Positions 1,477 through 48,835 are shown, counted from the first letter of the stretch. The stretch is 64,000 nt of DNA from Dimorphilus gyrociliatus (GCA_904063045.1 CAJFCJ010000013.1:473954-537953); one strand, 5' to 3'. Numbers and translations: made by a program. The notes: a model not told the origin generated them from the letters alone.

Positions 1477-3655
1477 TACTAGTAATAATCCCTTATAATG
1501 TTTTTTTACTATCTATAATCTTTTATCTCCGTAACTGCAATTAAAACGGGTAGAGGAGTGAGAGCAGGGTATCTTGATTATAAATTATTAGCTTTACCGT
1601 AGTCTATAATTCTTTGCAGGGCATTATTTTTCGTTTGTTCATCAAGTCTTTTATTAATTAATTCCATTTGCCACGCTTCTGCCCTCATATTACGGCCGAC
1701 TGATGAACATGTAATAGAACTTTTTCTACTATTATCTTCTTCTGGTTTGGTAGCAATTTTTACTGTCTTTTCAATACGAATTGGTGGTTCTTGATCTATT
1801 TTATAGTGTACATCATTTGCATCATCTACGTAATTTTCATGTTCTATTGAGGGTCTTTTATGCAATCTCTCCCTTTTTACTTCTTCTTTTTCTTCTGGGG
1901 ACAAAATATAGTCATTATCACCATCTGTTCTGGACGCAAAGTCCTCATCTCCATCGTCGAATGTTGCTATTTTAACTCTAGTTCGAGAGGGACTAGGCTT
2001 AAAGATATCGTTTTTACCAGGTTGAACCATTCTAGGTACATAGTCAAATACATCAACCTATAGAGTATAAAAAATTAAGTATATTTGCTCGAGAATATTA
2101 AATAGAATACTAACATCGTTCATTTCATCCATCATTCGCTTTTCATATATATCGGGATACAATTTCTTTAGACAATTTTTTCTCAGTCTATTAATAGGTT
2201 GTACTCTTAATGATCGGCTCGGTAGCTTTAATTGGTCACTTTTTTGCTTTTCAATAGTCCATTTAAACATGAGAACTGCATTGGAAAAAAAATCATGTAA
2301 CTGTCCATAAAGTTATTTGTCGATACCATTAGCGGCCATTTTGTTACTATGACAATAGTACAAACAATTAAGCCTAGTTTCGATTTGGGATCTATTTTTT
2401 TTTGGGGGAATATAGAGTAGACGGAATATATAATATATTTCCTAATTATGAAATTCTCTTACCTTTCCTTATCCCATATTTCCATTCCTGCTACTTTCCT
2501 TTTCACTTATCCTGAATACTTTTCAACGCTTAATATCTCTCATAAAAAGAGAATCATACTCATTAGGATTATTTTTCGTTCATTAGAATACAAAAAAGAG
2601 AAAATATTCCTTTTTTCTTGTTAATTAAAATCAAATTTATTCATTCATTCATTCACTACCTACTGACGAATATATAGGGTATTCACTCATTCATTCATTT
2701 ATCCATCCATTTATCCATCCATCCATCCATATATCTATTTGTCTGTCTATCTATCTATCCATACATACATACATACATTCGCACATTCATTACCTGTACC
2801 ATTGTTATATCCTTTTCATAGCTCTTTTTCTTTTCTATACGTTACAAACACTAACAAACCATGTAAACAGGCACAAAAACGAAATACTCTCATATTTTTC
2901 ATTATCATTATTTTTTTCCCTTATATTTTTATCCTCTAATCATTTACTTTTTGCAACGACACTCAGGTTCATAATAAATTTCTTCAGGGTTATTCCAACT
3001 TCTTTTACCGGGACCATTCCAATCAGCTGCCTGTTTCAGGGCTTAAATAGAACAGCTTTATTAAAGCTTAATTATTATTTTTCTCTTTTTTTTTACATAG
3101 AAATAGACTTTATCATTTTTTTAAAATTATAAATTCTTTTCATTCGAGAATAGGCCTACCGAATAATTTAGCTCCAACGCTTGAGGGAGAGCGTAGCCTA
3201 GCATGAATAAGAAAAATTGAATAAATATGTATTATGCAAAAATTTTTCTATTAATAAATGATAATAAGATATTTATTATTAGTTATTTGACAAACTCACT
3301 TCATGTAATGCATTTCGATTTCTTTGACGATATCCTTCAGAATTGTATTAGTTCCATCCTTTTTTAAACTTTCCACCCTTGATTAGGAAAAGATGCCATA
3401 TATGGATAAAAGACATTTACATAATTGAAAATGCACTTTGGTCAAATTTTTTCGTTTTTTTGTATTAAAATTTTTTTTTTTTTGATTTAGGTTTCGTTGG
3501 CGGCTTTCATCTTTCTTTCTCAAATGTAACGAAATAGGGACACTATAAGAGCTTAGAATAATCTTGGAGCTTTATTAATAAAACTTACTTTTTATAATTA
3601 AACGAAAAATGGAATTAATATATTTGAAAGGTATAAAAAATTTCATTTATTCATT

Positions 3656-3695
<40 letters not shown>

Positions 3696-4406
3696 GAGGA
3701 GAGAGGGGGAAGGGAGAAAAAATAAAACAGAGAAAAATAAATGAGATATCCTTTAGAACTTACATTGTACTTGGTCTTATTAAAATTACTAGCCAACAGC
3801 CATATAGATAAATAAGTAATCTTCCATTCATTCTTGAACGAATTAACAGGATCGTTTGACTCTTATCAGTCTAGTGTCTCAACTTTAAAGAAAACCAAAT
3901 CGGGCTGATTTATTATAATAATTTGATGCTAATTGAAAGCCTCTTCTCATTAGCAAATTTTTTTGTTAAATGACAAAAAAATTCTGTCTTTTTCTTTTGT
4001 TTTCCTTAATATCTAATTTAAATAGTTACACTTTTTCTACTACGAAATTGGACCTTGTCTGGTAAGCAATTCTCTTTTCTTGTCAGTTTCTTACTTAAAA
4101 AAAGTTTTTTTTAAGGCTTACTATCAAGAAATACTGTCTAAAAAGCATAACTCTTTCGCCAACCCAACTTTTAACGCGGAAGAAGATCTATCTGCTTCAT
4201 CCTCAATGACAACCTGTCTGTCGGATATTGTTATCAAAGAAGATCTGTCCGAAGAAACGGAAGACAAACTACTATCTTATAGCGCCGAGTACACGAGTCT
4301 ACTGATAAATAGGAACTTTTCATTTGATCACTCAAATTTACATTGTATAGGATTTCCGTGCCTTTGTCAGTTCGCGCAGCATAAAAACAATATTCGATCT
4401 AAATAG
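81..4406 (+). CDS. TMEM268: TMEM268-like membrane protein, 5'-partial; exons ~81-190, 730-997, 1321-1431, 4026-4061, 4116-4406
   Basis: GT-AG exons splice in frame: LQSGHLLF..ELLSHGLQ|IDPEVYEK..two hydrophobic helices..|LRKQLKKTISSVNSIFIKQNVLLG|LHFFYYEIGPCL|..LLSYSAEYTSLL..FPCLCQF. These track recalled human TMEM268 blocks (LHNGQVL, RHRVLLG, LWFVYFDLENC, IPCPCQL). Confidence 0.8.
361..530. repeat. Compound microsatellite (GA)n/(GATA)n in TMEM268 intron
   Basis: Runs of gatagatagata and gagagagaga are directly visible. Confidence 0.9.
1578..2339 (-). CDS. Uncharacterised ~217-aa hydrophilic protein nested antisense in TMEM268 intron 3; exons 2339-2327, 2275-2115, 2057-1578
   Basis: The ATG sits in a caaaATGGcc context, the introns are ~50-57 nt GT-AG with matching phases, and they join ORFs 2058..2270 and 1578..2030 (MAANVLMFKWTIEK..DEMND|VDVFDYVPRMVQPGK..YGKANNL). 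Confidence 0.7.
2640..2780. repeat. Compound tetranucleotide microsatellite (TCAT/TCCA/TCTA/CATA)
   Basis: Tandem tetramers are directly visible. Confidence 0.85.
2944..3831 (-). CDS. DH31: DH31 (calcitonin-family diuretic hormone 31) neuropeptide precursor nested antisense in TMEM268 intron 3; exons 3831-3764, ~3551-3421, 3377-3300, 3197-3160, 3041-2944
   Basis: Exon 1 encodes a signal peptide MNGRLLIYLYGCWLVILIRPST followed by a GTAAGT donor. Exons 3-5 splice in phase to VESLKKDGTNTILKDIVKEIEMHYMK|LRSPSSVGAKLF|ALKQAADWNGP-GKR-SWNNPEEIYYEPECRCKK*. The amidated C-terminus matches the annelid DH31 ending SVGSKLRALKQAADWNGPamide as I recall it. Exon 2 needs a 1-nt correction in an A-run. Confidence 0.85.
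3660..3715. repeat. (GA)n microsatellite in DH31 intron 1
   Basis: About 16 GA units followed by a purine tract. Confidence 0.9.
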
Positions 4407-4532
4407 GAACTTCTTGGAATCTGTATTTCCCATTTATTTAAAGGTAAAATAAAATTCAATTTTTAGTTAAAAAGTATATCAAAGCACATTTTGTTTTAAT
4501 GTCGGGAAATTCAGAAAAAATCTCTCTTCCTT

Positions 4533-5880
4533 TTAAAATAGATAAACGATCAAGAGGAAGGCGGAAATGAAACCGAAGAAAACGTTTACTTTATTTACGG
4601 CTGCAGAATTTACTGCAAAAAAAAAAAGAAAATCATTATACCTAATACATTATTAATTGTATGTAAATAATATACAGAATATATACAAATTAATTGCTAC
4701 CTACCAATAAATTCAATTTTAAAATTAGCTTCTTTCTCCTCATTGTTCTCTAGAACAACCTTTATAGTCATCTTAATCTCACCCTCTAAATCTGCTTCAT
4801 CAGAAAAGCTAATATCACCAGTATAATTACGCGTGCCACTATTATCTTCGATTTTTAAACCAACTCCGTAATTGGTGTTGCCGCAAGTAACGCTATTCTT
4901 ATCGTTTCCCCATATCAAGGCCGTTTCATTGCAATCGATATCTGCAGTTGTGCGGATACTGCACGGTAACGTCACATGTCCTGGCTTAAACGCTTTAATC
5001 GAATAATTTTTACAACTCAAATGAATTTGGGAAGTGATGCCTGCAACATCAGTATTCTGTTCCTCCGAAGGCTCCGTTGTGGCCACAGTTTCTGTTACTT
5101 TTGTTGATTCGATAGCTTTTTCCGTACTTGGAGTTAAGTTACCCTGTTTAGGCTCGACGGTTGATATTTTGCTATCAAGATTCGATTGTGTAGATGATGA
5201 CTCAACTCCAACAGATGAAGTGGTCAAATTTTCTGAAATATCGAATGTTTTTACAGTGACAGTATCCTCCGCAGTGTTGTTGGTTGTGCTGGTAGTGACA
5301 GTATTATCTGCAATAGTATTGGTTGTATTGACAGCGGTCTCATTGATAGAAGTTTTAGAATCTGCCACTGTTGGAGCTTGATTCGTTGTTCTATCATTCG
5401 CTGTTGAATCTTGTAACTTGGAAGTTGTTGTTTGCTTATTATCTTCTTCGGTAGAAGTGGAAATTTTCTTGGAAGTTTGCAAACTAGCTGTACCAGTCGT
5501 TTGCGCTGTTGGTTCTTTTGTGCTCTTATCAGTCTCTGAAGTAGTTGAAGGTGACTTCGTTGTTGAGAGACCTTCTGAAGTAACAGCCGTATTTCCTCCA
5601 ACGGTAGTAGTAGCTTCGGCTGCATCTCCTACAATATTTTAGAATATAGCAATTTATTACAACATATGAAAAATAGAAAAGTCGTTTTCATACCTTTCAC
5701 ATCATCATTGTTTAATTTTGCAGCTGTAGATGTAATTGTAGTTTCTTGACCTGTAAAAAAGACAAGATTGATAGTCACTTCTATAATCATTTTCGCTCTT
5801 AAAAACAATTTACCTGTGACGAATAGCACAGTCATATGACAGAGAACTGCTACAAGAAAACATCTCTTCGACATCATCAT
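4533..5880 (-). CDS. Secreted, predicted GPI-anchored mucin-like protein (~375 aa) with a Cys-containing Ig-like domain; exons 5880-5814, 5750-5694, 5628-4705, 4612-4533
   Basis: Signal peptide MMMSKRCFLVAVLCHMTVLFVTG, ~200-aa Thr/Ser-rich region, 4-Cys beta domain (VTLPCSI..LIWG) and terminal exon VNSAAVNKVNVFFGFISAFLLIVYLF* typical of a GPI signal. All three introns are phase 1 GT-AG. Confidence 0.75.
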
Positions 5881-32600: not shown

Positions 32601-35600
32601 AACGAATGGTGTCCTGACACGGTAGGACTTAGACGAGATCTCTTACCCGAAGCCTGGGTTCTCCAATATCATGCTCATCTTGAAAGAACATTCCTTTTAC
32701 CGATCAAATCTGTAGAAAATGATCATCCATCACAAAGCAAAGAAAATATTAGAATAATGAGAGTCGATAGGAAATGTCTATTGAAAGTTGAGCCTAGTCG
32801 TGGTGCTCAAAGTGTTGGGGTTTTATATCCCAATGAAACAGTTATAATTATCACTCAGAAGGATCTTCCCGATGGAGAAGTTTGGCTTAAAGTTAAATTT
32901 GAAAAAAAATTAAATAACAGACCTTCAAGTTCTTGGCTATTACTAAAAGATAATCAAAAAATATATGCTTCTGATATATCTGGGGGAGAGAAAAGAATTG
33001 GTGAAACAAATCAAGAAACCGACTCCTTGCCATTGATTCCTTTTGATATAGCATCGCCCAGTTGTAAAAATCCAACAGAAACAACTATTTCAAGGCAAAA
33101 TGAACCTATAGCAAAAGGCCTGAAAGATCTGATAAATGCTGTTGGAGAAAGTCGAGCCAATGGCAACGGTAAAACGCCCCCGAGAACGCCTCCACCGACT
33201 CCCAAAAAAACTCAAGCCAAAAAACGATCTCCCATAGACGATGTATCTCGCAATCGATCCACTAGTCACTCCCCCACGTCATCTCCTTTGTATGTACTAC
33301 GAAAAAAGTCGTCTAATACAACTGATGGATCTTCAAAAATTGAAAAGACTAATTTTTGTAATGCAAGTGATATTTTACTTCCATCTTTGGCTGAATGTGC
33401 TCGAACTGTTTTCGCTGCAATTCTTCTTCATGAGGGAATAGTTCACGATGCTATGACATGCGCTACTTACTTGAAATTTCATACAGACTTGACGAAAACT
33501 GATATTCTTAAACTAAGCAACTTGACAGATCCAGATCATGAAACTGAATACCCAGCAACTTTAAGATATACAGTCGGATTGTGGTCAAAAGTATCTGGTC
33601 ATATTTATAATGTGGTTAAGAACCATCCAGAAAAAGTAATAATACCATGTATTCCTCAATCAAAAGCAGAGACTAGTACCAATGAAAAAGAAACAGTTTG
33701 TGAACTATGCCTTCAAGTGGTTGAAAGACCCCCTTCCTCTCACATGAGGCAAGAACATCCAGGATGCGGAAAACCATGTGGTGGCTTTGGCTTTAATAGC
33801 TCTGGTGTTTATTGTAATGGTTGGTCTGGATCATGTGGTGAAGGTGGTTCAGGAGGTAGTACTTGGTACTTAATGTGCTATCAGTGCTTTGCAAAATATT
33901 TGCGAGATAGAACCGAAAAAATGGACGGTGAAGAAAAGCGTGTCGCAGTAAAACCTATTCCATGCATTTTAGAACAGAAAACTGATTTATCCTTTCAAGA
34001 AGTTATTCGCCGCAATGCAAACTTTTTATTGCAACTTAGTCCCTCATTTTCAGCAGCTACAGACGTTATGGATATGACAGAGGCTTTTATTACTTCAAAT
34101 TTTTCATACGTTGATGCTTCGGCTACTAAATGGCAGGACAAAGGACAAAAATTAGTAAAAGGTTTAAGTCGATCACAATTTGGACCAACCAGCGGATCCT
34201 TGAATGAGATGGAGCCACAAGGGTTTAGGTCTTTAAGATCACCTGCTCAAGAAAAAGCTATAGACTCGTCAAATGACCCTTCTATTCTTCATAGAAGTAT
34301 TTCAGAAGCTACGTCTAATCAAGAAGCTATCAACAAGTCTGGTCGTAAAAGAGCTCAAAGTACTGGAGTTGCGTATTCTTCCAAAGATAAAATTATGATA
34401 CATCAGCCTTCTCCTGCTCTTGTAAAGCTTTTCATGAATTGTCAGGATAACATTGATCATGATCCTGTTGTAATATTTGTGAAGAGTAAGCAAAACGTAG
34501 ATTTATTAGAAATGGCCTGCAAGCAAGCTATTAGAAAGGCTGCTTGTAAAGTTTTTGCTCTTCAGGCCTTCGATTGGCTTTTAAAAATTGCAACACAGTC
34601 TTCGTGCATACATGACGTTCTTTGGTCTTTTATCGCCGCGTTATCACCTATTGGTGAAAATGGAAGCAAACTAACTCCCCCTCCTCCAGGTTCGTTTGCT
34701 GGGAAAAATCCTGTTCGAGACATCGAAATAGCTGGCTTGGCCAGTGGTTGCGTATCAAGATTACTACAACGTTTTCTGCAGGATGTTGCTGATCTCATTA
34801 CTCATCTATCACCGTCTTCATCAATTCAGATGATGGCTATTAGATGTTTTTCAATCGATTTCTATCAGCAGGATCATGCATTCCTCCACAAGTGTCGTAT
34901 TTTCAACAGAATTGATGAAATTTTGTCCAAGTCTGAAAGTTTAGGGGATCTACAGAATTGGAGACATCACGATGCTCATCATAACTCTTACGTATCTAAC
35001 TTTATTGAACTGAAGATTGAAAGTATAACCGTCTCAAGTAGACCAGCGATGTTATCCAGTCTTACAGATAATAGCACAGAAACTTTTTGGGAAAGCGGTG
35101 AAGAGGACAAGAACAAAGCTGTAAAGACAATTATTGTATTTTCCGAATCAAAAATTAATAGAGCTCTCATATACGTTGATAATGTTAAGGATAACTGTAA
35201 CAGATTGGCTCAGGCAACTTTCTATGGCAATTTCTCTCAATCAAATATTGAAAAAATGCTTTCAACTGAAGTGGATAACAAATTTAGTGGTTGGATAGCT
35301 GCAAATATATTACCCCCTTGCACGTCCGTTAAGATTGATCTAAAAAGTGTTGATGCAACAGTAAGAATTAGACAAGTGAAAATTTTAACGGAGCAAGTTA
35401 TGACCGATATCACGTCCTCTAGTATGATAAGTCTGCAGCAAAACTTGTGTGAGAATGAAACACTGAAGATATTTAGACAGCTGACATCTCAGGTTCTTGG
35501 TCAATTATTTAAAGAAAAGCATTCTGGAGACGACTCTATTGATTTAAGAGATCATATGCTGGGTATCCTTTTCTCCCGACCCAAATTGAGCCAGATGCAA

Positions 35601-37565
35601 CAGGAAATTTGTGCTCACATTATGAGATCAATACGCAAAGAAACTGAAAAATTGAACTGCGATACGTACTGCAACGAACTAATCTCAATGCTGTTGGCTT
35701 TAAGCAGTTCCATGGTTGGCAGAGCTTATCTATCCCAACAACACAACTTGATTCACGATCTTCTTTTATTATTTCATGGATTTTCTGGAAGGGTTCAGAA
35801 ACAAATATTAAAGCTCTTAAAGCGCGTCTTCTATCTTCTGACTCCTAAAGCTTTTGCTGAAGTTATAAAAATCAGAGAGTTGCCTCCTGATGATTTTACC
35901 AGCTTGTTAGCTTCAGAAAATCTTCTTTCTCAAGCGCCTAAACTACTAGACTGTCTGCTTTCGATCGTGGCAAAGTCTTTAAAAGTCCAATATCGAGTTA
36001 AAGGACAAGGACAAAGGATGGCGGCTAAATTTGTGTCTTTCCAGGAATGTGTCGAAATATCTGATCATGAATGGTGGTTGAAAGGACACTCTGATCCGTC
36101 ATTAAGTAAAGAAACGATTATATTCATTGAGAATCTCGCAAAAGGTGCCATAACTGAAGAATGGGCGAGAATAACAAATGCTTGTTTAGCGCAGTCAACC
36201 TTAGCTCTAATGACCGCAACTGAAACTGATAGGAACCATGAAGACTATATGAAATCATCGACATTTTGGTTGGCACTTGCTGCTTTATCAATTTTACAAC
36301 AAGAACATGCAGCTAAATTGACATCGTCGGCGAATAGAAAAACGGCTTGCGATAATCATGACGACGGAGAAACAAGAGCCATTTTAGAATGCAATACCTG
36401 CGGCTACTTGTGTGCCGATTGCGACAGATTCTTACACATGAGTAGAAAGTCTCGATCTCATTTGCGAAATGTTTTCAAAGAAGAAAAGGAATCAATTCGA
36501 GTTGATTTACACGAAGGCTGTAGACGAATAAAACTATTCTGGCTAATGGCAACCGCAGATTCTTCCACAGGCAATGTTATATTGGAATTTCGACAACATA
36601 ATTTGTCAACATCGGGCGTTTGTAGGTTTTGCTCGAGCCCCGCAGCTATGTCATCGGCAGTTGGAAATGTATGTGACGATCAGGATTGCAAGAGACATGC
36701 AGAAACAGCATGTACGAAACAGCTAATTTGTGGTCATATGTGTCAAGGTGTAGCGGAAGAACTTGACTGTCCGCCGTGTCTCAGCGGTTGTGGTGGCTCA
36801 AAACTCAAGCAAGATGGCGATGACATGTGCATGATTTGCTTTAGTGAGCCATTGTCGGCAGCTCCAGTTTTACATTTAGAATGTGGTCATGTATTTCACT
36901 TTCATTGCTGTGAGGAGGTCTTAAGAAAGCGTTGGATCGGACCAAGAGTAACTTTTGGATTCATTCTCTGTCCAATTTGTAAACGACGAATCAACCATCC
37001 GAAATTGCTACCATTGACAAAACCAATAATTGAACTTTACCAAGATGTTGAACGTAAAGCGCTGATGCGATTAGATTATGAAGGTTTCGATAAAAAGGAA
37101 ATGAATGATACTAAAGATGTAGCCATATTTGCTATGAACAGATACGCTTATTACGTATGTTCTAAGTGTGAAAAGGCTTATTTTGGAGGTGAAGCTCGAT
37201 GTGATGAAGCATTACATCTTAACGACGATTTTAACCCTGAAGAACTAGTCTGTGGAGCCTGCTCTGACGTAGCGATGGCTCAAATGTGTCCTCGTCATGG
37301 CTCTGATTATTTAGAATATAAATGTAGATATTGTTGTAGCGTTGCAGTATTCTTCTGCTTTGGGACAACCCACTTTTGCAATATGTGCCACGAAGATTTT
37401 CAAAGATTAACAGGTATATCGAAAGAGTTGTTAGCCAAATGTCCTGCTGGTCCGAAATCTATTCAATTGGATGGAACCGATTGTCCGCTTAAAGTAGAAC
37501 ATCCCCCTACTGGTCAAGAATATGCCCTAGGCTGTGGTATTTGCAGAAATGCTCATACATTTTAA
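23668..37565 (+). CDS. MYCBP2: PHR-family RING-Cys-relay E3 ligase (MYCBP2/Highwire/RPM-1)
   Basis: RCC1-like repeats (VALGKAHT, GYNHKGQCG), two PHR domains (SKKSNNGTDVNSGQIPQI; LSSNGTNHIRGQIPQI), DOC/APC10-like TETFWESGEED, B-box, RING-H2 (CMICF..CGHVFHFHC..CPIC) and tandem-cysteine domain with both relay cysteines (EARC, FFCFG), ending CRNAHTF. Confidence 0.97.
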
Positions 37566-37814: not shown

Positions 37815-40448
37815 TCAGTCGTCAGGTAATGGAATATCTGGTATAATAACCCCATCCGCCAATTCACTACCCGATGAAAGATTTCTGAAAATAAACGTAC
37901 ATGAATAACATTTCTATATTTGCGAAAAGTTCAATTTACATACCCATCATTTACATAACCTCTTCCTGCTTTATCTTTTCCGTATCGCCTATCTCTTTCG
38001 ACATCAGATTCATCATTATCATTAGAATTTGAGGATCGACATCGCCGTCTATGGGAAGTTTTGTTATAACTTTTAGAACGGCTTCTTGATCCACTGCTTG
38101 AACTACTACTGGATCTGCCTCTGGATCTCTTCCATGATCTTCGTCGAGACCGGCTGTTTGATCTGGAGGAGGGTCTTCGTCTAGATATACTTCTCGATCG
38201 ACTCCGTTTTCTTTCAGATGATCTGGAATTGTAATTTTTATTGTTTCTCGATAAATTTGGTGATCTTGATTTGCGCCTGCTTTGATATCGATCTTTTGAA
38301 CGGTCTATCGATCTACTTTTGTCAGTTGATCTTCTTGAAATTCTTCCTCTCTGTCTTCCGCTGTCCAATGAATGACTCCTTGATCTCCTTGAGGTAAACG
38401 GTGATCGTCTTCGCTCAAACTCTCTGGAGCGATTTCTTTCTCGTGACCTACCATATCGATAACGGCGATCATTACCACGATTTTTACTTCTAGATCTCGA
38501 TCTACTTTCTGATCTTGAAGCTTTACGTCTATCATCACGATCCTGTCTCTCCCTGGAGGAATTTTTATTCGACATTCTAGAAGTGTAACGTCTTTCAGCA
38601 TTTTCGGATGGAACTCCAGTAGATATTTTCTTTGCTTGCTGGCTGTCAAGGCTTCGTGATCTGCTCCTCTCCCTTTTCTTCTTGGGGGATTCGGACCTGT
38701 TTTTATCCGATCGAACGGTTTTCTCCGGTTGCGGTTTACAGTCATCAGAGTGATGTTTTGGGGATTGAGATCTATCTCTGTCAGAGAATAATCTTCTCGA
38801 GGGAGATGCTTCATGTTTTTTTGAAGTTGATCCTCTACTTTCTGAGCGACTACTCCGAGAATGGGACGACGATGAATTATCTCTAAACCTATCCATCTTA
38901 TCACTATATCGTCCAGATTGTCTTTCCGATACCTTTCGATCAGGCGATCTATCATTTTCTGATTGCCTCCGGCGATCTCGCCAACGGTTCGGAGATCTTG
39001 ATCGCCTAGAACCATTTCTGCTACGATCATTTCGAGGAGCAGGTTGACGCCTCGGCTCGGTTTTCCATCTGAGATCATCGCTCGGTCTAGACTCATTTCT
39101 GCTTGGGCTATGTGTATTATATTTTCGAATCTCTCTTTTCCAATATGGTGGAGTTTGACTTCTAGATCTGGATGATCTTCTATAGCGTAATACTCCGTGG
39201 CCTTTAACAACTGTCCCATCACGATTGCATCTTCGCGGGCGTAGAACAGTATCTTTATTCAATTTTTTTTCAGACGTTTCATTTTTATCATCTCTATCTC
39301 TTAGGAAATTCGTCGATCCCCCATCAGGTATTTCTTCAGGTCGAACAGTAGAAAAATGCTGATTATCCTCGTCGTCTTTCTCCGACTCTTCGGATTCATC
39401 ACTTTCATCTTTATCCTTCTTCTTTTTCTTTTTCTTCTTCTTCTTTTTCTCTTTCTTTTCCTTTTTCTTCTTCTTCTTCTCTTTTTCTTTTTCCTTGCAT
39501 TTATCTTTCTTTTTTTTTTTCTCTATTTAATTCAAAAGTCAACAGCGGAAAATGTTAGAAAATAATATTAAAAACAAACAAATGCACTAATTAAAGTTTA
39601 AAATATTTACATACTTTCTTTTATTTCCCCACAGTCCGCTACAGTAACGTTAACCAAAGGTTTATCTTTACTATCTGTTTCCACGCCCTCAATTAGTTTA
39701 ACAACTTTTTCACCTTCGATAACTCGTCCAAAGACAACGTGTTTTCTAATAAGATCAATTAACTAAGGTTAATGATTAAATTAGCATTTACTAAAAATGA
39801 CCTACCCATTCAAGTGTGGAGTTGGCACAGTGGTTCTATGAAAGAGTAAAAGGAGAAAAAAAGATGAGTTTATTGAGATTCAAACAATACCAGAATTTAT
39901 TAAATATTACATGAAAAATTGAGATCCATTCGTATCTTTTCCTTTATTCGCCATACAAAGTAAATAAGGTTGGTCTAACCTCTCCGAAAGATCTTCATCT
40001 GAAAATAATATTAAAATACAGACTTTTCAGATAATAAGATAATGCTGTTAGAACAACCTTCGAAAGTTCCACCGTATATTGATTCACCACCAGTTCCATT
40101 CATATTTCCGAAATCTCCACCCTGGATCATAAAATCTTTTATAACGCGGTGAAAAATGCATCCTTTGTAATGTAATGGTTTTTGAAATCTTCGACTAAAT
40201 CCAGAGTCCCCTACAAATGAAAAATATTATTCTAATGTTACATTCTTCAGAAGGGATATCTGATTACCATTACAAAGCGCCATAAAATTTTCTACTGTCT
40301 TAGGGCATCTCTTGGCATCCAGTTCAATTACTATGCGACCAACTGTTATTGAAATTCGATTAATATACAGTATAATAGAAAGGTTTAGTTATTTACGTTT
40401 ATCATTGCCAGCAGTTATATCCAAAAAAGCTTTTGGCTTTTCAATCAT
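37815..40448 (-). CDS. PPIG: Cyclophilin G-type PPIase with poly-Lys and long RS domain
   Basis: Motifs [35 protein letters not shown] and PHLNG..HVVFG, a K/E-rich linker and an RS-rich exon (ORF 37931..39262). A short final exon probably ends at 37815. Confidence 0.92.
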
Positions 40449-41161
40449 CTTGATAAAATTTAATAAAATTATATTTTATTAAAATTTGGGTATATTTGTT
40501 TTACGTTAACTTTAAACAAATTGCCCTTCAATTTTCTATTATTCTCCAAATATAAAACTTATATTAGAAGATTAACTATCAACATCGTAGAAGTAAACTA
40601 CAAAATTTTGAAGCGGTGCCACAAGCAGAGCGAAAATATGCGCAGGAATAAGTGTCTATATCCGGTTTTTAACTTCCGCCAAGCTGACTCGCACAGAATA
40701 GTTTTCAAAAAAAATAATTAAATAAATGGGTACTAATTATAAAAATAAAATTTATAAAAATATAAAAAATATAATAACTATAAATATAATAAATTTTTTA
40801 ATTTATACTAAATAAGAAAGACTAAAAATGTTTGTGTCTACATATTACTACATTTGTTGCCTAGTAATCCCTCCACTAAATAAGTAAAAGTAAATTTAAT
40901 TGAAAATCTAAAGTTATAATCTATAAGAGACTTTTGATTTACTGGATACTTTTCTTTTCTCCTAAATGTCTACTGTATCAAGAGTGTCTATAACTTACTG
41001 ATAGTCTTTTGTATATTATTTTCAAAATAATAACAATCGTGCAGTATCAAGCAAACAACTATAATTAAATTAATAATATCTGCAGTTTTATTATTAATAT
41101 ATTAATATAAAAATGATCTTGTTGAGTTTTGATTAGATTAAGAAATTTTTTTCCAATATTT

Positions 41162-44100
41162 TCATTTACTATCCGCTGAGAAATTAACTTTTTTTTGCTT
41201 TTCCTCAGTTATAGTATCACCCTGATTTCTTTCATTTTCCTCTTTTGCCGCTCTCTCCTGTCTAGAATCACAAACCAATTGTAGACAAGTAGCTAAATCA
41301 GTCGGTTCGAGCTCATTTTTATCTGTTTTTAATGAAGGAAATATTGAATAATGTATCATAAATACATCAACATTTATTATTACTAAAATGAATGAAACAC
41401 GGAGAATTAAATGGTTTATTAAGAAAAAAAATCATGTTCTTTTCTTTTCTAAATGTAATTTTATATTTTTAGTTTTTTGTTCCTGTCCATTTATTAATAA
41501 CCTTTAAGGCTTCTTCTTCAGTAGTCAATCTTTCAAGGACTTCGGTCGAAAGATTTACTTCCTCTTGTCCTATTACCTTTACATAAACCTTTGCTAAGGG
41601 AACTAATTTAGATTCAATAAGAGTAATATTTGCATTCTTTAAAATTTTTTTTGGTGGAGTAGTGTAAAGCTGAATTTCAAATTTCCCAGCAATGCATTTA
41701 GTTATGAAATTATAAACTGAATCTAAGCTCTCGGAAGGTTTAAAACAAGCTTGTAGAATTAAGCGATTAGAAAAGACAAATCGAATTATTGCTCTTTCAT
41801 ATATAGAAAATCTAGAATTCATCACTTCTTGTCTAAACTTTTGAGTTAGCAGTGGCTGGTTATAAGCATTTTCCACTGATGCCCGTAAAGCTTCCATCAT
41901 TTTTCTAACGTCATTGACAGTAACTTCGAAAAATTCGTCCGATTCTTCCAGTGGTTTAAAATCCGGAGCTTCAGCGGAATTGTATAACTTGGTTTCTCTA
42001 TCTAATAATTCGTCCACTACGCTACTCTCCTTATTATCAAGTTTAGCTACTGTAGGCTCACGTGCAACCGTAGTAGCATCCTCATCCATTTTAGGCTTTT
42101 TTTGCACTGGATCTGAAGTTATTTCTGATTCTGATGACTGTCTACTAGTATCCACTAATACTTGGGAATTTTCTGCAGTTAAGTAACGGATAATTGCCCT
42201 GCCTCCAAATAGGCCTAAATTTCGAAGTTGGGTCTTCTTAAGGGTCTCTTTACCAGCTATTCTCTCGGTTATATAGAGACAAACGTGATCTGAATCTTGA
42301 GTTTGTGCGAATACTCGTCTTACATCGTCCGTTGTTTTAGCTAAGCTTTCCTCTAGAATGTCCCATAAAGTCTTCTCAGGCCCGTGCTCTTGAATAGTTC
42401 GACTACCATCTTGAAATTGTATTGCTACCATAACTGGTTCTTCCTTTCTTTCTCCATCTGATTCAACTAGTTCCAACTTTGAGCGGTTGGGCAATCCGGA
42501 ATATCGAAATGATAATGTCAGATCAAGTTTCTTCTTTCCGTGCTTCAGTATATATTGACTGGGAGGTACAAATTTTTGCTTTAAACAAACTTCTTCCAGA
42601 ACTTGAAGCATTGAGCTTTTTGCAGTTACTTTTACTCTTTGCCAACGCCCATTCGGGCAGACGATTTCAACAAATGTTGACATTACTGATAAGATACTTT
42701 TTGGGAAATATTTGTAGATATGTTCCTTCAGAGTTAGTTACAGATACAAAAAGAAACTCAATGTTTTCCGTTGACAACCTCTTTAGCAAAATATGGACAC
42801 TTACATAGCGGATTGGTATTCGATAGAGAAAACTACCGGAAACGCGACTGAATGTTTTGTGATTTTTTTGCGCGAAAATGTCATATGTTTTAAATACTAA
42901 TAACTTGCCTATAACAGCCCAAGCTTCTACACCATCAATAATAGGATTCATCCAAGTTGATCTTCTCTTTCCAGCAAAGCCAGTGCTTGGTGGCGGGTAT
43001 AGCTCAAAAAGTATTTCCACTATTTCATGCTTTTTGAACAGTGTTGTTGGCGTTAGATTTTTACCTATATTGAAAAAAAATTGATATTAGATATTTTTGT
43101 TTGACTAATTAACAAACAGTTATCATATCAATATTTACCTCGATATATAAAATCCAAGGCCTCTCTAACCTCAGGCAGCGATGGATATAAGTGACACTCT
43201 TTTAAAAAGTCCATTAATGAGCCTAACTCAATTTCTCCATTGAATTGGAGTTTATCAAAAGTTTGTTCATACTCTGTATAAAACAGAAATATATAGAAAT
43301 CATTAGGATAAAAGGCAGCTAATTAAAAAAATTATCAACTTCTTTTAGCATCCATGAAACGATCAACCTCGGATAGATTGAAAGGGGTTTTGGGCCTTTC
43401 AATACCATGACGCACTTGAATTCGACGGACTAGAGCTTTATACTGAGAAGTGAATTTTGACCAATCACTTGCATGACTTTGGCATTTTCTTCTTAATTTT
43501 TCCATATTACGTCTTAAAAGGAAACCTCTAACGGTACTTTGAATTTTTGTAGCTCTTTTATTGTATTCTTTAACATCTAAATGTTTTGGTGGATTGAAAG
43601 CGCTGCAGGCAAATATCCAAGTTAAATTGCATATAATTCAAGACAACTGAATTTAAATAAATCTTACTCGTATACTTCAACATGTGGCCCAATCCTAGAA
43701 AGTTTATCCTTCTTTGATTGATTTTCATTTAAAAGCGCTTTTTTAGTATTTTCTACTTTAAATTGCCGTAACTTTTTCTTCTCTTCAAGCCATTGTTGAT
43801 ACTCTCCCTCCCAATCGGATTGATCATGATCCGAGTTTCGATTGTTTATACCTTTTAATCGCTGTTTATGTGCATAATATTCTCTGTACGGAAATGTAAT
43901 TATTACAATTCTTATTGTAAACTATACAAAGAGTAGATACTAACTTTTCAGAATTAACTTGCGCCAATCTAGCATCCTCTCGTTTCATTCTAAATTCTCT
44001 TCTTAAATATAAATACCTTGATCTTGTAACATAACCACGGAAGATTCGTTGTATATCAACAGCTGCTTTGTGTCTTCTCGTTTGTTCATTAGCCAAACGC

Positions 44101-47100
44101 TCCTCGTTGACGTTATTAACTATTAAATAGTGAGCGATTGGCCGGCCAGAACATTTTTTCGAGCTCACTATTGATGATTTTGATTTTATAGTTGATGAAG
44201 ATAATGGGCGTTCCCCTCTTGAAGATGCCGAGTTCATTCTATTGACGGAATGTTGCCTTTCGGTTAGCTGCAAGCTTTCTGCCCTTGCAATTAGTTGTTT
44301 TTCGTCCATATCAAATTTTGCTGTTGGTACTTTTATTGAATTATAAACATCCTGTTGAGTGCTCCAATTTTCAGATGAATTATGAATTTTAAGGTAAGAT
44401 CCTGAATGACTCCTGTAGAGCTGTCCCTTAGATTTTGGAGTTCTATAAACTACATCAGAAGTTGTTGGCCTTGGCATGAAGCGCATCACATGAATACCTG
44501 GTGGAATTTCCCCAGGCTGTACAATCTTTCTTTGATCAGGCTTGGGGGAGGAATACTGTTTGGGTGTTGATCGTCTAAGCGTAGAACCCATTCGAACCTT
44601 CTTGTTGAGATTTGATTTTTTATTACCGGAACCAACAATTTCCAACCTCTCCTGTCTTGGTAACGGAAGTTTATCGGAAGGATTCATAGGTTGTCTCATT
44701 TTTCCTGGTTTCTTCAAACATCCTCCTCTCGTAACCTGATAATTATTCAAATCGGGATAAGGGCTTTTCGACTCAATTTTAGGAGAGGGATTTGGAAGGG
44801 GATTATGATCAAATTTTACGTGTTCACTGCCCAATTCCAAAGTAATTTCTTCTTTTAACTTTTCCGTCTCTTCCATAATTTCATTCGCTTCCTCCTCTTT
44901 CCACTCAGCCGTCTTTTGTTATGTAAATATTTTGTAAAGAATGTAGTAAAAGAATATGGTAAATTCTGTGTACCTCATAATTGTCATGCCATTGTTGATC
45001 ATTCGTTACTACAAAGTGATCTGTGGAATTCGGTACATTCATAACCGAATCGTGTCCTCTGTGAGAACAGTGATAATCACAACAGATAGAATGAATGAGA
45101 AGATAAATGCTAAAGAAAAAAACAAGAATAAATGGGGTACAAACCTCTCCTCTTGAGTGTTAATTGTTCTGGCACTTGGCAACCTGTCACCAACTGACAA
45201 AAAATGATAGATTAAGAAAGGATATACTAGATAAGTTAATACAAAAGTAAGAAAAATCTATTATACCCAACATAGACTTTGGGGCGCAAAATGATACGAA
45301 TTCCGTATGTTGAGGAGGTTGATTATCAATTTTTTTCATTTCCTATTTTTTACAAATTTATTTACTATTCGATTTTTCTATTGTCAATAAATAATTAATT
45401 TCGATATTTTTCTTACATGATATCCAAAATCAGAGTACTTTATCCTTTTCCTTCTCTTTTTGGACTTTTTTCCTAAACGTTGACTTGTTAGTAAAGTTTT
45501 AGAGATATTATCTTCAATAATAGTTGTTGTATGACTAGCGGCTTGACTCATCCTTTTATTCTTGCGGCTTGGCTGTGGATTATTTAAAATTAATAAAAAA
45601 TTTTCATATCTCCTTATCTTTTTCGTAATAATGAATGTGGACTATTTTAACGAGTAAAAAACATCATTATAAGCAGAAGAAAATATATGTATGAGAAGAG
45701 AAAAAATTTCTTTACCAGACTTTCTAATTCAAAGTTCAAGGCCTTCCGTCTTTCGGTAATATCCTTATTTAGCGAAGTTTGAAAGTATTAGTAAGTTTGT
45801 AAGAAAGATAGGAAGATGCTTTTTCATTAGAAAAACTCACATCATCTCTCGTCCAACGCTCCCGTGGTGTAGTGGGAGGCACTCTAGGTCGAATACTTCC
45901 TGTTGTACTACCCTGGCTCCTAAGAGATTTTCGTTCTTCGTCCAATTTTCTTACATAAGTATGATTTTCGAAACCTCTCTGAGAGCCTGATTTTATTGTA
46001 AATTTTCCAGATGAGGTATCCGGTGTTATTATTCCTCTCCAATCAACATAAATATCACCATCATTGCCGGAGATAGCTCCCGTACGATTGAAACTATCGA
46101 TGTTGGATTCTCTGTAAATTTGATAAAGTAGTTTTTTTTTTAGATACCAGAGTTTAATTTTGAAAATGTTTGCACTTTATGGAATAAAATAGGAAATTTT
46201 GTAAAATTAAAAAATATTTAAAAAAACAAAGTAATAATGGAAAAAAAAACAAAGTAAAATACAAAAAATAATATCATAATTAACTCGAAAATGCAATCGA
46301 AATAATAAAAAAATAAATGAAGATGGAGAATTTTTTCAAGGTATTTCTCAAATTTATTTTTGCACTCTCAATAACTTACGATCTTTCAAACGCGACCATT
46401 TTTTTTATCTTCTTTTTCATCCTACACTCATAATTTATACTTAATTAAACCGAATTCCAAAATAAACATAGCATAAAAGATTTTAATTTGTCACCTACCT
46501 ATCTGGTTCTGGTGTACAATGAGGTGGAATAGGATCCGATGAACTCATAGGACGACTACAAGAATTACTACTCTCTGATTTTGTCTCGTCTTTAATTGGA
46601 ATTTTCTCCAAAAGCGGCATATGGGAGTTTTCTCCCGCCATATCCTCTCCAACAGAATCAACAAGATTAACAACAGTTTTCAATTTAATACAATTTGAAG
46701 AATTATCTTTCTTTTCTATCTCACTACAAAAGTACACATTTCCATTATGATTATCATAATAAATAAAGGAGTCATTTTTATAATTAACCTTTTATTCACT
46801 GATTTATTAGCCGATAATAATCGATTTCGATCGTTTTTTCTTTGTGGAAAATAATTTTCAGTTTGAATTAAAAATTCAGTCAAAGGTTTCGATACTAATT
46901 CTCTTCCGGCTGGTTGGATATCATCTATATTCAATAATTGATTTAATAATAAATTAAAGAATTGAATAATTGATTAAATACTTTTAGTTGGTTGTACAGA
47001 AGCAAAATAGTTAATAACATCGCTAGTATACTCTTCATTCCTTATAAAACCGTCTGTATTTGGCTTTTGTAATTCGTCTACAGATTGTTAATTGATTATA

Positions 47101-48835
47101 TGTTGTTTTTATGGATTTAATATCAATTGTCAATACCTAAAATTTGCATATTTATATCCATATCTTTAACAACTCTTTCTAGTTTATTCATTTGAGCGGA
47201 TTTTCTTTCACTTGCGCTAAGAGGTCTTCCACTGGCGTCCGAAGCTGTGAAGTGTAACGGATATTTATTGACGAATAATGAATTAACTTAAAAGCTAAAA
47301 ATATTTTAAATAACGGAGAAAAAAAATACAAAAATAATATTCATTTCTTCCGTTTTAATCTATTGTGATAAAACAGATATTTATGAAAAAAGTCTAGCGG
47401 AAAGAGAAGAGATAAAGATTGAAGAAGATTTATTAGAGAAACGCTAAAATACAACTTTTTCAAACATTTCTTACCGTCTAAGCCGGAGAATGTTACTCTT
47501 TTTACTTTTATAAAACAATTCAAAGTTATTAGATGAAAATAAAAAGGGGGAAAATCGGTTATATAAAATTAATTTATTTTGACAAACAATGTAAACTTTT
47601 TTTTTTGTTAGTAAAAACTTTATTGTTGTTAACATTACAAGTAAAAATAAAGTAAAACGTACCTTTTGTTTTTGAGATTTGTTTATGTGTTTCGTTTCTC
47701 ATTGCGTCCATCTCTGATATTTGACGAGCAAGCGGGTTGACTAGATGGGAAAGCGGTAATATTGGCCTCTTTACCAATTCAACTTCTTGTCTATCATCTA
47801 TCCTCTCGGAATTAATAGAAGATCTTTTATATTCCGCAGTGCTCGGCCTCGATTCTTGTTTTATGAAAGATGAATTTTCTGAATTTGTCTATAAAATAAA
47901 GTAAACAATTATAGCGAATAAAACTATAAAATAGATAACAAACCGCAATTGTTGAAGCGGATTGAGGTCTACTAAGCCGTAAATCTTCCAGAAGAGCTTC
48001 GGGAGATGTTTTAAAGAGAAAAGAAGTTTTAGATTTTGAGTCATTCTCAGTCGTGACCTTATCTCTACCAAAACGCTAAAAAATCAAATACAAAGAGAGT
48101 GAAAAAAAAACTTATTAGGTTCTCCAATCTTCTATTTGGCAGATAAATATTACCGGTTTGGCGTAAAGAACGTGCCTATTCCCCAAATACCAGCCATATA
48201 TTTTTCTAAAGTTTGATATTTGCAGTTTGTGCTCTAATCTGTTTCCGAGTAAAGAAAAATCATTAATATTAATAATCTAGGGTGCTAAAGACTATAGATC
48301 CATTTAAAGATTTCATAGCAGAGTTATTTAAACCTATTAAAAGATTAGTAATAAAGACGAAAGCTTTCGACAAAAGGGAGAATATCTATTGATTGTATTG
48401 TTTAGTTGTGTTGTTATTTGTTTGAATCTTGAAAGATTAGAGATTAGCAAAGTATTTCTTAAGGAAGATTACTTACCCTAGAGTCTCCAGCATCATTCTG
48501 ATGAGCATATAATAGAAGTTACTATCATGATGTAGTTGATCACTTTGTAGGAAAAGTTATATAAATTAGTTTTAACAACTTTCTACAGCATAATTTATTT
48601 ACATTGAATCCTTTGGTGTGCCTGTCAAGTGCGCAAGTTCTATTTCTCTAAAATGCTGGTTTATTTCTGCATGCAATTCTTTAAATTCTTTAATTTTCAT
48701 TAGCTAAACGTGTTTAAATTATGAATATACAATGCTAGTGTAAAAGAAGAAAAAGACTACTTTGCACGGTTCCAATCTCTTCAATCCCCGGCTGATTGTA
48801 TTTATTCTATCCAAAACAGATGGTGGAGCGGGCAT
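41162..48835 (-). CDS. IQCM: IQCM-like IQ-motif protein with long N-terminal extension, many exons; final intron is GC-AG (42908-41323)
   Basis: IQ motif IQRIFRGYVTR. Blocks DWRGI, RRIQVRHG..NLSEVDRFMD, ECHLYPS, KHEIVEILFELYPP, STWMNPIIDGVE and LQLVCDSRQER match recalled human IQCM blocks in order. Continuity of all 5' exons into one gene is inferred from manual phase matching. Confidence 0.72.
41469..42683 (-). CDS. ASPSCR1: TUG/ASPL (tether containing UBX domain for GLUT4), single exon, 404 aa
   Basis: N-terminal UBL (PNGRWQRVKV..LSFRYSGLPNRSKLELV), second UBL, FFEVTVNDVRK and extended UBX (IRFVFSNRLILQACFKPSE..YTTPP..LVP). Confidence 0.92.
   Translation of the reverse strand: MSTFVEIVCPNGRWQRVKVTAKSSMLQVLEEVCLKQKFVPPSQYILKHGKKKLDLTLSFRYSGLPNRSKLELVESDGERKEEPVMVAIQFQDGSRTIQEHGPEKTLWDILEESLAKTTDDVRRVFAQTQDSDHVCLYITERIAGKETLKKTQLRNLGLFGGRAIIRYLTAENSQVLVDTSRQSSESEITSDPVQKKPKMDEDATTVAREPTVAKLDNKESSVVDELLDRETKLYNSAEAPDFKPLEESDEFFEVTVNDVRKMMEALRASVENAYNQPLLTQKFRQEVMNSRFSIYERAIIRFVFSNRLILQACFKPSESLDSVYNFITKCIAGKFEIQLYTTPPKKILKNANITLIESKLVPLAKVYVKVIGQEEVNLSTEVLERLTTEEEALKVINKWTGTKN

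Follow-up and report, generated by a model that had tools for sequence, protein, structure and literature searches.

Same-strand nesting of an intronless TUG/ASPSCR1 gene in the last intron of an IQCM-like gene of Dimorphilus gyrociliatus

Genes that lie wholly within an intron of another gene are well described in Drosophila melanogaster, where 71% of nested genes are antisense to their hosts, and 72.5% of same-strand nested genes have a single exon compared with 37.4% of those on the opposite strand, an excess attributed to selection against mis-splicing (Lee and Chang 2013, PMC3814207). Here, we describe a similar arrangement in a 64,000-nucleotide (nt) stretch of the Dimorphilus gyrociliatus genome (GCA_904063045.1 CAJFCJ010000013.1:473954-537953; referred to throughout as the window), in which the TUG/ASPSCR1 gene, for short TUG, occupies the last intron of an IQCM-like gene on the minus strand. 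As in the fly, a short intronless coding gene sits entirely inside a host intron and on the host's strand. The fly genes, however, are mostly young, fast-evolving, testis-enriched duplicates, whereas the Dimorphilus TUG gene is a sole copy, old, conserved, and of a housekeeping type, and the TUG/IQCM pair has been kept across lineages with saturated synonymous sites. TUG within IQCM adds a well-supported case to a type of gene arrangement that is already known, and it reveals no new mechanism. It also resembles the orphan retrogenes, which Ciomborowska et al. are said to have described in 2013 as retrocopies that replaced their intron-bearing parents: TUG, too, is a lone intronless copy at a new location, multi-exon in other phyla and with no parent left. 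Unlike in those cases, retroposition in Dimorphilus is inferred, and there is no poly(A) tract, target-site duplication, or known donor locus.

Splicing of the host across TUG

The original prediction, drawn from the DNA alone, held that IQCM is spliced across a same-strand intronless TUG gene through a 1,586-nt GC-AG intron with its donor at 42908 and a phase-matched acceptor at 41323. All of these coordinates check against the window, and the predicted joint is present in RNA. We used assembled spliced contigs from X1, the one public run containing this stretch, which match the window with zero mismatches; ambiguous joint cuts were shifted to GT..AG. The features at the center of the analysis are as follows.

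42909-46113, minus strand: host part covered by a spliced contig, with exons 46113-45841, 45763-45716, 45572-45417, 45342-45267, 45193-45145, 45058-44974, 44912-43945 (first IQ motif), 43883-43668, 43602-43340 (second IQ motif), 43273-43139, and 43064-42909
41323-42908, minus strand: host last intron, 1,586 nt, phase 1, GC-AG, with the whole TUG unit inside (from the RNA joint 41322/42909)
42903-42908, minus strand: noncanonical 5' splice site of the host last intron, ...ATAG/GCAAGT (from the sequence and the RNA joint)
41116-41322, minus strand: host last exon (e12), coding at 41322-41165 (D/KNELEPTDLATCLQLVCDSRQER...ADSK), stop at 41164-41162, the remainder 3' untranslated region (UTR)
41469-42683, minus strand: coding sequence of TUG/ASPSCR1 (UBXD9), 404 amino acids (aa), a single uninterrupted exon from ATG to TAA
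41485-42768, minus strand: TUG RNA contig, unspliced, 1,285 nt

A 2,632-nt RNA contig spans 46113 to 41116 with eleven joints. Ten of these have GT..AG ends on the minus strand and skip 61 to 143 nt, so that every intron among the host exons from 46113 to 42909 is short and GT-AG. The eleventh, 42909/41322, skips 1,586 bases and reads CT..GC on the plus strand, corresponding to GC..AG in the direction of the gene. When the contig was joined in a local script, it gave one frame of 861 codons, still open at the 5' end and terminated by the TAA at 41164-41162. TUG is represented by another contig, 1,285 nt long, which is unspliced and collinear with 42768-41485; it carries neither a host-exon joint nor a leader, and a single base is unaligned. 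Depth arithmetic for run X1 reveals no contig coverage of 42769-42908 or 41323-41457, and the depth in the bin 42728-42921 is wholly accounted for by the host and TUG contigs together. These contigs confirm a TUG gene nested on the same strand within the host intron. Given that the joint was predicted from sequence, is in frame, and leads to an exon conserved in other phyla, its agreement with the RNA goes far beyond chance. We consider it very probable that this minus-strand stretch carries two independent protein-coding genes, with TUG nested in the last intron of the IQCM-like host.

Both splice sites of the long intron are used in RNA. The host exon ends in ...GCT TGG GCT GTT ATA G/GCAAGT, with its final base at 42909 and GC at 42908-42907; the donor AG/GCAAGT departs from the consensus in having GC at +1/+2, and its remaining positions match. 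The acceptor, a CAG, reads ...TTAAAAACAG/AT AAA AAT GAG (in longer context, ...AAAAACAG/AT AAA AAT...), with AG at 41324-41323 and the exon starting at 41322. The phase-1 joint yields D-KNELEPTDLATCLQLVCDSRQER...ADSK followed by the stop TAA at 41164-41162. The distance from the donor to the TUG ATG is 225 nt, in agreement with the approximately 225 nt that had been estimated as left for the TUG promoter and 5' UTR.

Identity of the host and nested genes

Homology searches were run exon by exon, and the joined reading frame was examined in the local script only. A Pfam scan of each host exon returned IQ motifs (PF00612) and no family name: the motif in exon 43602-43340 scores 22.7 bits, above the 20.3 cut-off, and that in exon 44912-43945 scores 19.2 bits, slightly below it. 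Searched against 1.84 billion representatives, the 87-aa exon 43602-43340 matches proteins of Tubulanus, Ruditapes, Lingula, and Lottia (E values from 5e-15 to 8e-10), with the matches near the C-termini of lophotrochozoan proteins of 1,431 to 1,767 aa. The same exon matches "IQ domain-containing protein M" of Suncus and Ctenodactylus (P0176 and P0177) at an E value of 3e-4. The Ctenodactylus protein is collinear on e8, e9-e10, and e11, with a summed E value of 6e-20, and the e9-e10 and e11 pieces are common to P0176, P0177, and the longer relatives. The long homologues in turn match the window collinearly by tblastn from 48703 down to 42907. On the strength of these exon matches and collinear homologues, the host is best read as an IQCM-family gene and a homologue of mammalian IQCM, in keeping with the identity first proposed for it.

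The host is far longer than that proposal assumed, with homology to about 48.7 kb. The upstream part is defined as follows.

46501-48703, minus strand: host upstream part (from homology and one loose contig end)

The loose contig end at 46113 maps to 46501-46528, which places the next exon near 46528-46501 after a 387-nt intron (46114-46500). This is a second unusually long intron in the host beside neighbors of 61 to 143 nt. The Tubulanus, Ruditapes, Lingula, and Lottia proteins match the window by tblastn with their N-terminal parts at 48703-48476 and 48222-48154, and the host frame continues open beyond the ATG at 44876 that a list of open reading frames would suggest as the start; the gene probably begins near 48.7-48.8 kb instead. 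Mammalian IQCM measures 470 to 540 aa, whereas the Dimorphilus host has at least 861 aa with a long N-terminal part that the mammalian proteins lack, as in other lophotrochozoan forms. The last approximately 250 residues are homologous and collinear between the two, comprising the IQ motif, a helical region, NPI(I/V)DG, and a C-terminal (C/V)xxLVxxSxxER. A second IQCM-like subgroup, represented by Lamellibrachia P0106 (L008) and Mytilus P0087, has a differing tail, ...D(F/I)xxCL(K/R)xV..., and the Lamellibrachia protein carries an N-terminal VWA domain; the data suggest that the IQCM family has paralogues in lophotrochozoans. Two X1 contigs diverge from the window at 43557 and 45415, each with 255 unmatched letters, and may represent alternative isoforms, chimeras, or repeats.

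The exon beyond TUG supplies the family's conserved C-terminus. A tblastn search of the window with 13 homologues did not find this 52-aa exon at E <= 1, and Smith-Waterman alignment with shuffles and profile-profile comparison were therefore needed. After the NPIIDG(V/Q)EA block, the homologues continue as ...G-SEFVEPAPLxxCAKLVIxSKRER..., where e12 of the window reads D-KNELEPTDLATCLQLVCDSRQER. Smith-Waterman scores of e12 against lophotrochozoan and starfish tails range from 47 to 72, while shuffles give about 24-31 +/- 5. A profile of three worm e12 exons aligned by hhalign with a profile of ten tails reaches a probability of 91.6% and an E value of 8e-7, in the expected register. The two methods agree on the earlier alignment of this far exon with the IQCM C-terminus. 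The 3' end of the host also includes a candidate polyadenylation signal.

41087-41092, minus strand: candidate host poly(A) signal AATAAA, inside the block AATAAAACTGCAGA, which is identical in a related worm (L002, described below)

The nested gene encodes a protein with the domain order of mammalian TUG/ASPSCR1/UBXD9, namely, TUG-UBL1, a second UBL with LGL-x-GG, and a C-terminal UBX with a YTTPPK loop. In Pfam, TUG-UBL1 (PF11470) covers aa 8-72 over the full profile with an E value of 5.4e-24 and 84.5 bits (cut-off, 23.3), and UBX (PF00789) covers aa 304-366 with 27 bits (cut-off, 21). An alignment of six TUG proteins shows the YTTPPK loop of UBX to be invariant, together with L156, G157, L158, G161, A163, I165, and R166. 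The second UBL closes with a conserved LGLFGG di-glycine, within LRNLGLFGGRAIIRY; this di-glycine is where the mammalian protein is cleaved. Named "tether containing UBX domain for GLUT4" proteins from Lingula, oysters, abalones, and Saccoglossus share 42-47% identity over the domains. From this domain homology, TUG is predicted to serve as a UBX-domain cofactor of the p97/VCP ATPase. The Dimorphilus protein is small, with 404 aa compared with 485 and 497 aa in its two nearest relatives and 550-680 aa, mostly 550-640 aa, in other animals, and the alignment shows that the central linker joining the second UBL to the UBX region is largely missing, which fits gene-level streamlining in a compact genome. 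Unlike its mammalian counterpart, the Dimorphilus gene is intronless and nested. An additional, intron-bearing ASPSCR1 copy had been raised as a point to check, but a six-frame search of the whole 77.9-Mb assembly (77,897,245 bases, 349 contigs) found no TUG copy other than the nested one.

The pair in related worms

We compared the window with two relatives, L002 and L004, which carry the two closest TUG proteins (61-66% identity). In L002, a 29.7-kb genomic contig, a single strand carries host exons e3-e11 (81-2734), an intronless TUG gene for 497 aa (2952-4445), and e12 (4580-4735); the L002 e12 is 75% identical to that of the window. The genes flanking the pair are syntenic between the window and L002, and a 1,602-aa neighbor is 88% identical. 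L004, a 1.76-kb contig from a third lineage, has TUG followed by e12 118 nt later. TUG contains no introns in the window or in either relative. Among the three lineages, TUG shows synonymous differences (pS) of 0.72-0.83, which are saturated, and nonsynonymous differences (pN) of 0.20-0.23; judged by these values, the lineages are deeply diverged and TUG is under purifying selection. Dating by synonymous divergence (dS) was rejected because synonymous sites are saturated.

At the equivalent host position, the L002 donor is a canonical G/GTAAGC, which means that the GC donor is not required for nesting. The GC dinucleotide is a later, D. gyrociliatus-specific change, and the suggestion that a weak GC donor could act as a switch finds no support in view of the L002 sequence. 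The regions on either side of the TUG coding sequence can also be compared.

42769-42908, minus strand: putative TUG promoter region, the 140 nt from the host donor to the first TUG contig base, without contig coverage
41373-41420, minus strand: candidate TUG poly(A) signals, two AATAAA hexamers at 41420-41415 and 41378-41373

Blocks shared by the window and L002 upstream of the TUG contig include TTTTCGCGC at 42878-42870, TCCGG at 42840-42836, TATCGAAT, and AGTGTCCAT. The first of these is an E2F-like block (TTTSGCGC) conserved in L002. The ETS-like CCGGAA that had been pointed out near 42836 is present at 42836-42841 on the plus strand, but its GGAA core is not kept in L002. The TUG 5' UTR measures at least 85 nt, and TUG would have its own promoter in the 140 nt past the host donor. 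At the other end, the two AATAAA hexamers lie 91 and 49 nt upstream of the host 3' splice site, and L002 and L004 each have one AATAAA 50 nt ahead of the host acceptor. A signal is thus found 49-91 nt ahead of the host acceptor in each of the three lineages, and TUG transcripts in the window would use those at 41373-41420.

Two further observations concern the surroundings of the pair. Positions 1-1764 of L004 begin about 100 nt ahead of the TUG ATG and continue without splicing past the AATAAA into the host last exon; if this run is RNA, it represents read-through of TUG or host pre-mRNA, and if it is DNA, it has no significance. Close to the 3' end of the host, a 14.9-kb RNA contig of a convergent plus-strand gene ends at 40638, about 450 nt from the host poly(A) signal (region 40400-40638). 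This gene includes a 1,602-aa open reading frame at 32757-37565, and its L002 counterpart has RING and SH3-like matches.

Mechanism, origin, and alternative readings

Host transcripts run through TUG, and the splice seen in the RNA contig, which links the GC donor (42908) with the acceptor (41323), removes TUG and adds the conserved 53-residue C-terminus. TUG would be transcribed from its own start in the intron, at or slightly upstream of 42768, as the separate contig and the putative promoter indicate, and its transcripts would end at the AATAAA signals 49-91 nt ahead of the host acceptor. A TUG gene without introns would offer no competing splice sites to the host, which is the usual condition for tolerating same-strand nesting. 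Several points weigh against this account and the history proposed for it below. The RNA evidence comes from a single run whose library type is unrecorded, in the form of assembled contigs, which cannot reveal transcript starts, ends, strand, or minor isoforms; they thus prove neither where TUG starts nor that its poly(A) signals are used, nor that unspliced or early-ended host transcripts are absent. The relatives are Logan assemblies. The time and mode of intron loss in TUG are judged from one mollusc only, and neither a poly(A) remnant nor target-site duplications are seen around TUG (41323-41468 and 42684-42908).

Two readings of the transcripts compete with nesting of independently transcribed genes. 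The genes could stand in tandem, with the IQCM-like gene ending before TUG via the read-through GKLLVF...NIC* to 42667 and with 41162-41322 separate; the frame is indeed open for 80 codons past the donor, and one mammalian IQCM tblastn alignment extends into it. The RNA contig, however, joins 42909 to 41322, rather than showing host transcripts that end in 42670-42900 with the far exon unjoined, and 42769-42908 has no contig coverage. The read-through peptide, tried as a candidate C-terminus and rejected, scores at chance against the tails of all 13 homologues, and in L002 its frame stops after three codons, as GKL*, whereas e12 is conserved and aligns with the C-terminus of the family. We regard a tandem arrangement as almost certainly wrong. 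TUG could otherwise lack a promoter and be made from the host primary transcript, either in an operon-like manner or through processing of the host intron, whether excised or retained. In favor of this reading, the host donor and the first TUG contig base lie just 140 nt apart, and contigs cannot prove where transcription starts. Against it, the TUG contig shows no host-exon joint or leader with its one unaligned base, 42769-42908 is uncovered, and the upstream blocks, including the E2F-like site, are common to the window and L002. The published genome analysis of D. gyrociliatus reports no spliced leaders, trans-splicing, or operons (PMC7854359), which argues against an operon-like origin of the TUG RNA in particular. 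A host-derived TUG transcript is, overall, highly unlikely.

How TUG came to lie in this intron is less firmly settled. A phase-1 intron at the same codon, without a gene, is present in Lottia (273 nt) and in the annelid Lamellibrachia (480 nt), which means that the host intron predates the insertion; the Lingula IQCM locus is without a 3' end and was left out of this comparison. In Crassostrea virginica, TUG extends over 7.5 kb with at least 16 coding blocks and 15 or more introns; its neighbors are an ERCC6-like gene and CCDC33, and IQCM is not nearby. The loss of all introns at once, the new location, the compact mRNA-like unit, and the single copy point to retroposition into the intron. 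We think it probable that an mRNA-derived TUG copy was inserted into the ancestral intron in a dinophilid ancestor and that the intron-bearing parent was then lost, although no scars are left. TUG might instead have lost its introns stepwise or by cDNA recombination at the old locus and been moved into the IQCM intron by a rearrangement at the DNA level. In favor of this route, TUG shows neither of the marks of retroposition named above, and D. gyrociliatus has lost some introns overall, although its genome keeps most ancestral introns (PMC7854359). All of the introns of TUG, at least 15 by the oyster count, are gone, yet the host keeps many short introns and the ancestral one that holds TUG, and the insert is compact (85 nt or more of 5' UTR, the coding sequence, and a short 3' end), as expected for an mRNA copy. 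With synonymous sites saturated, the scars of retroposition would have decayed anyway, and their absence is not decisive. We consider such a route unlikely. Retroposition or intron loss had been offered as possibilities in the original prediction; retroposition into a preexisting intron fits better.

A more far-reaching reading is that the pairing is itself functional. TUG poly(A) cleavage and splicing of the host last intron would compete in each host transcript, thereby coupling full-length IQCM to use of the signal, and the T-to-C change that created the GC donor would have retuned the balance; on a wider view, many rare long introns in this compact genome may owe their length to same-strand intronless genes within them. 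This reading draws on the retention of a TUG poly(A) signal 49-91 nt before the host acceptor in three lineages, and we consider it improbable.

At the TUG/IQCM locus, same-strand nesting is clear and backed by RNA; the nested gene is the only copy of an ancient, conserved gene, and the arrangement has survived long divergence. Introns of D. gyrociliatus have a median length of 66 bp, with most ancestral introns kept and some lost (PMC7854359), and the host intron is 24 times that median because it houses the TUG gene. A compact genome has fitted an entire gene, including a candidate promoter of approximately 140 nt, into 1.6 kb. Such a locus poses a risk for annotation, which can readily overlook the host last exon and fuse or truncate the two genes. 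It also offers a small natural system in which to study how polymerase disregards a poly(A) signal inside a gene.

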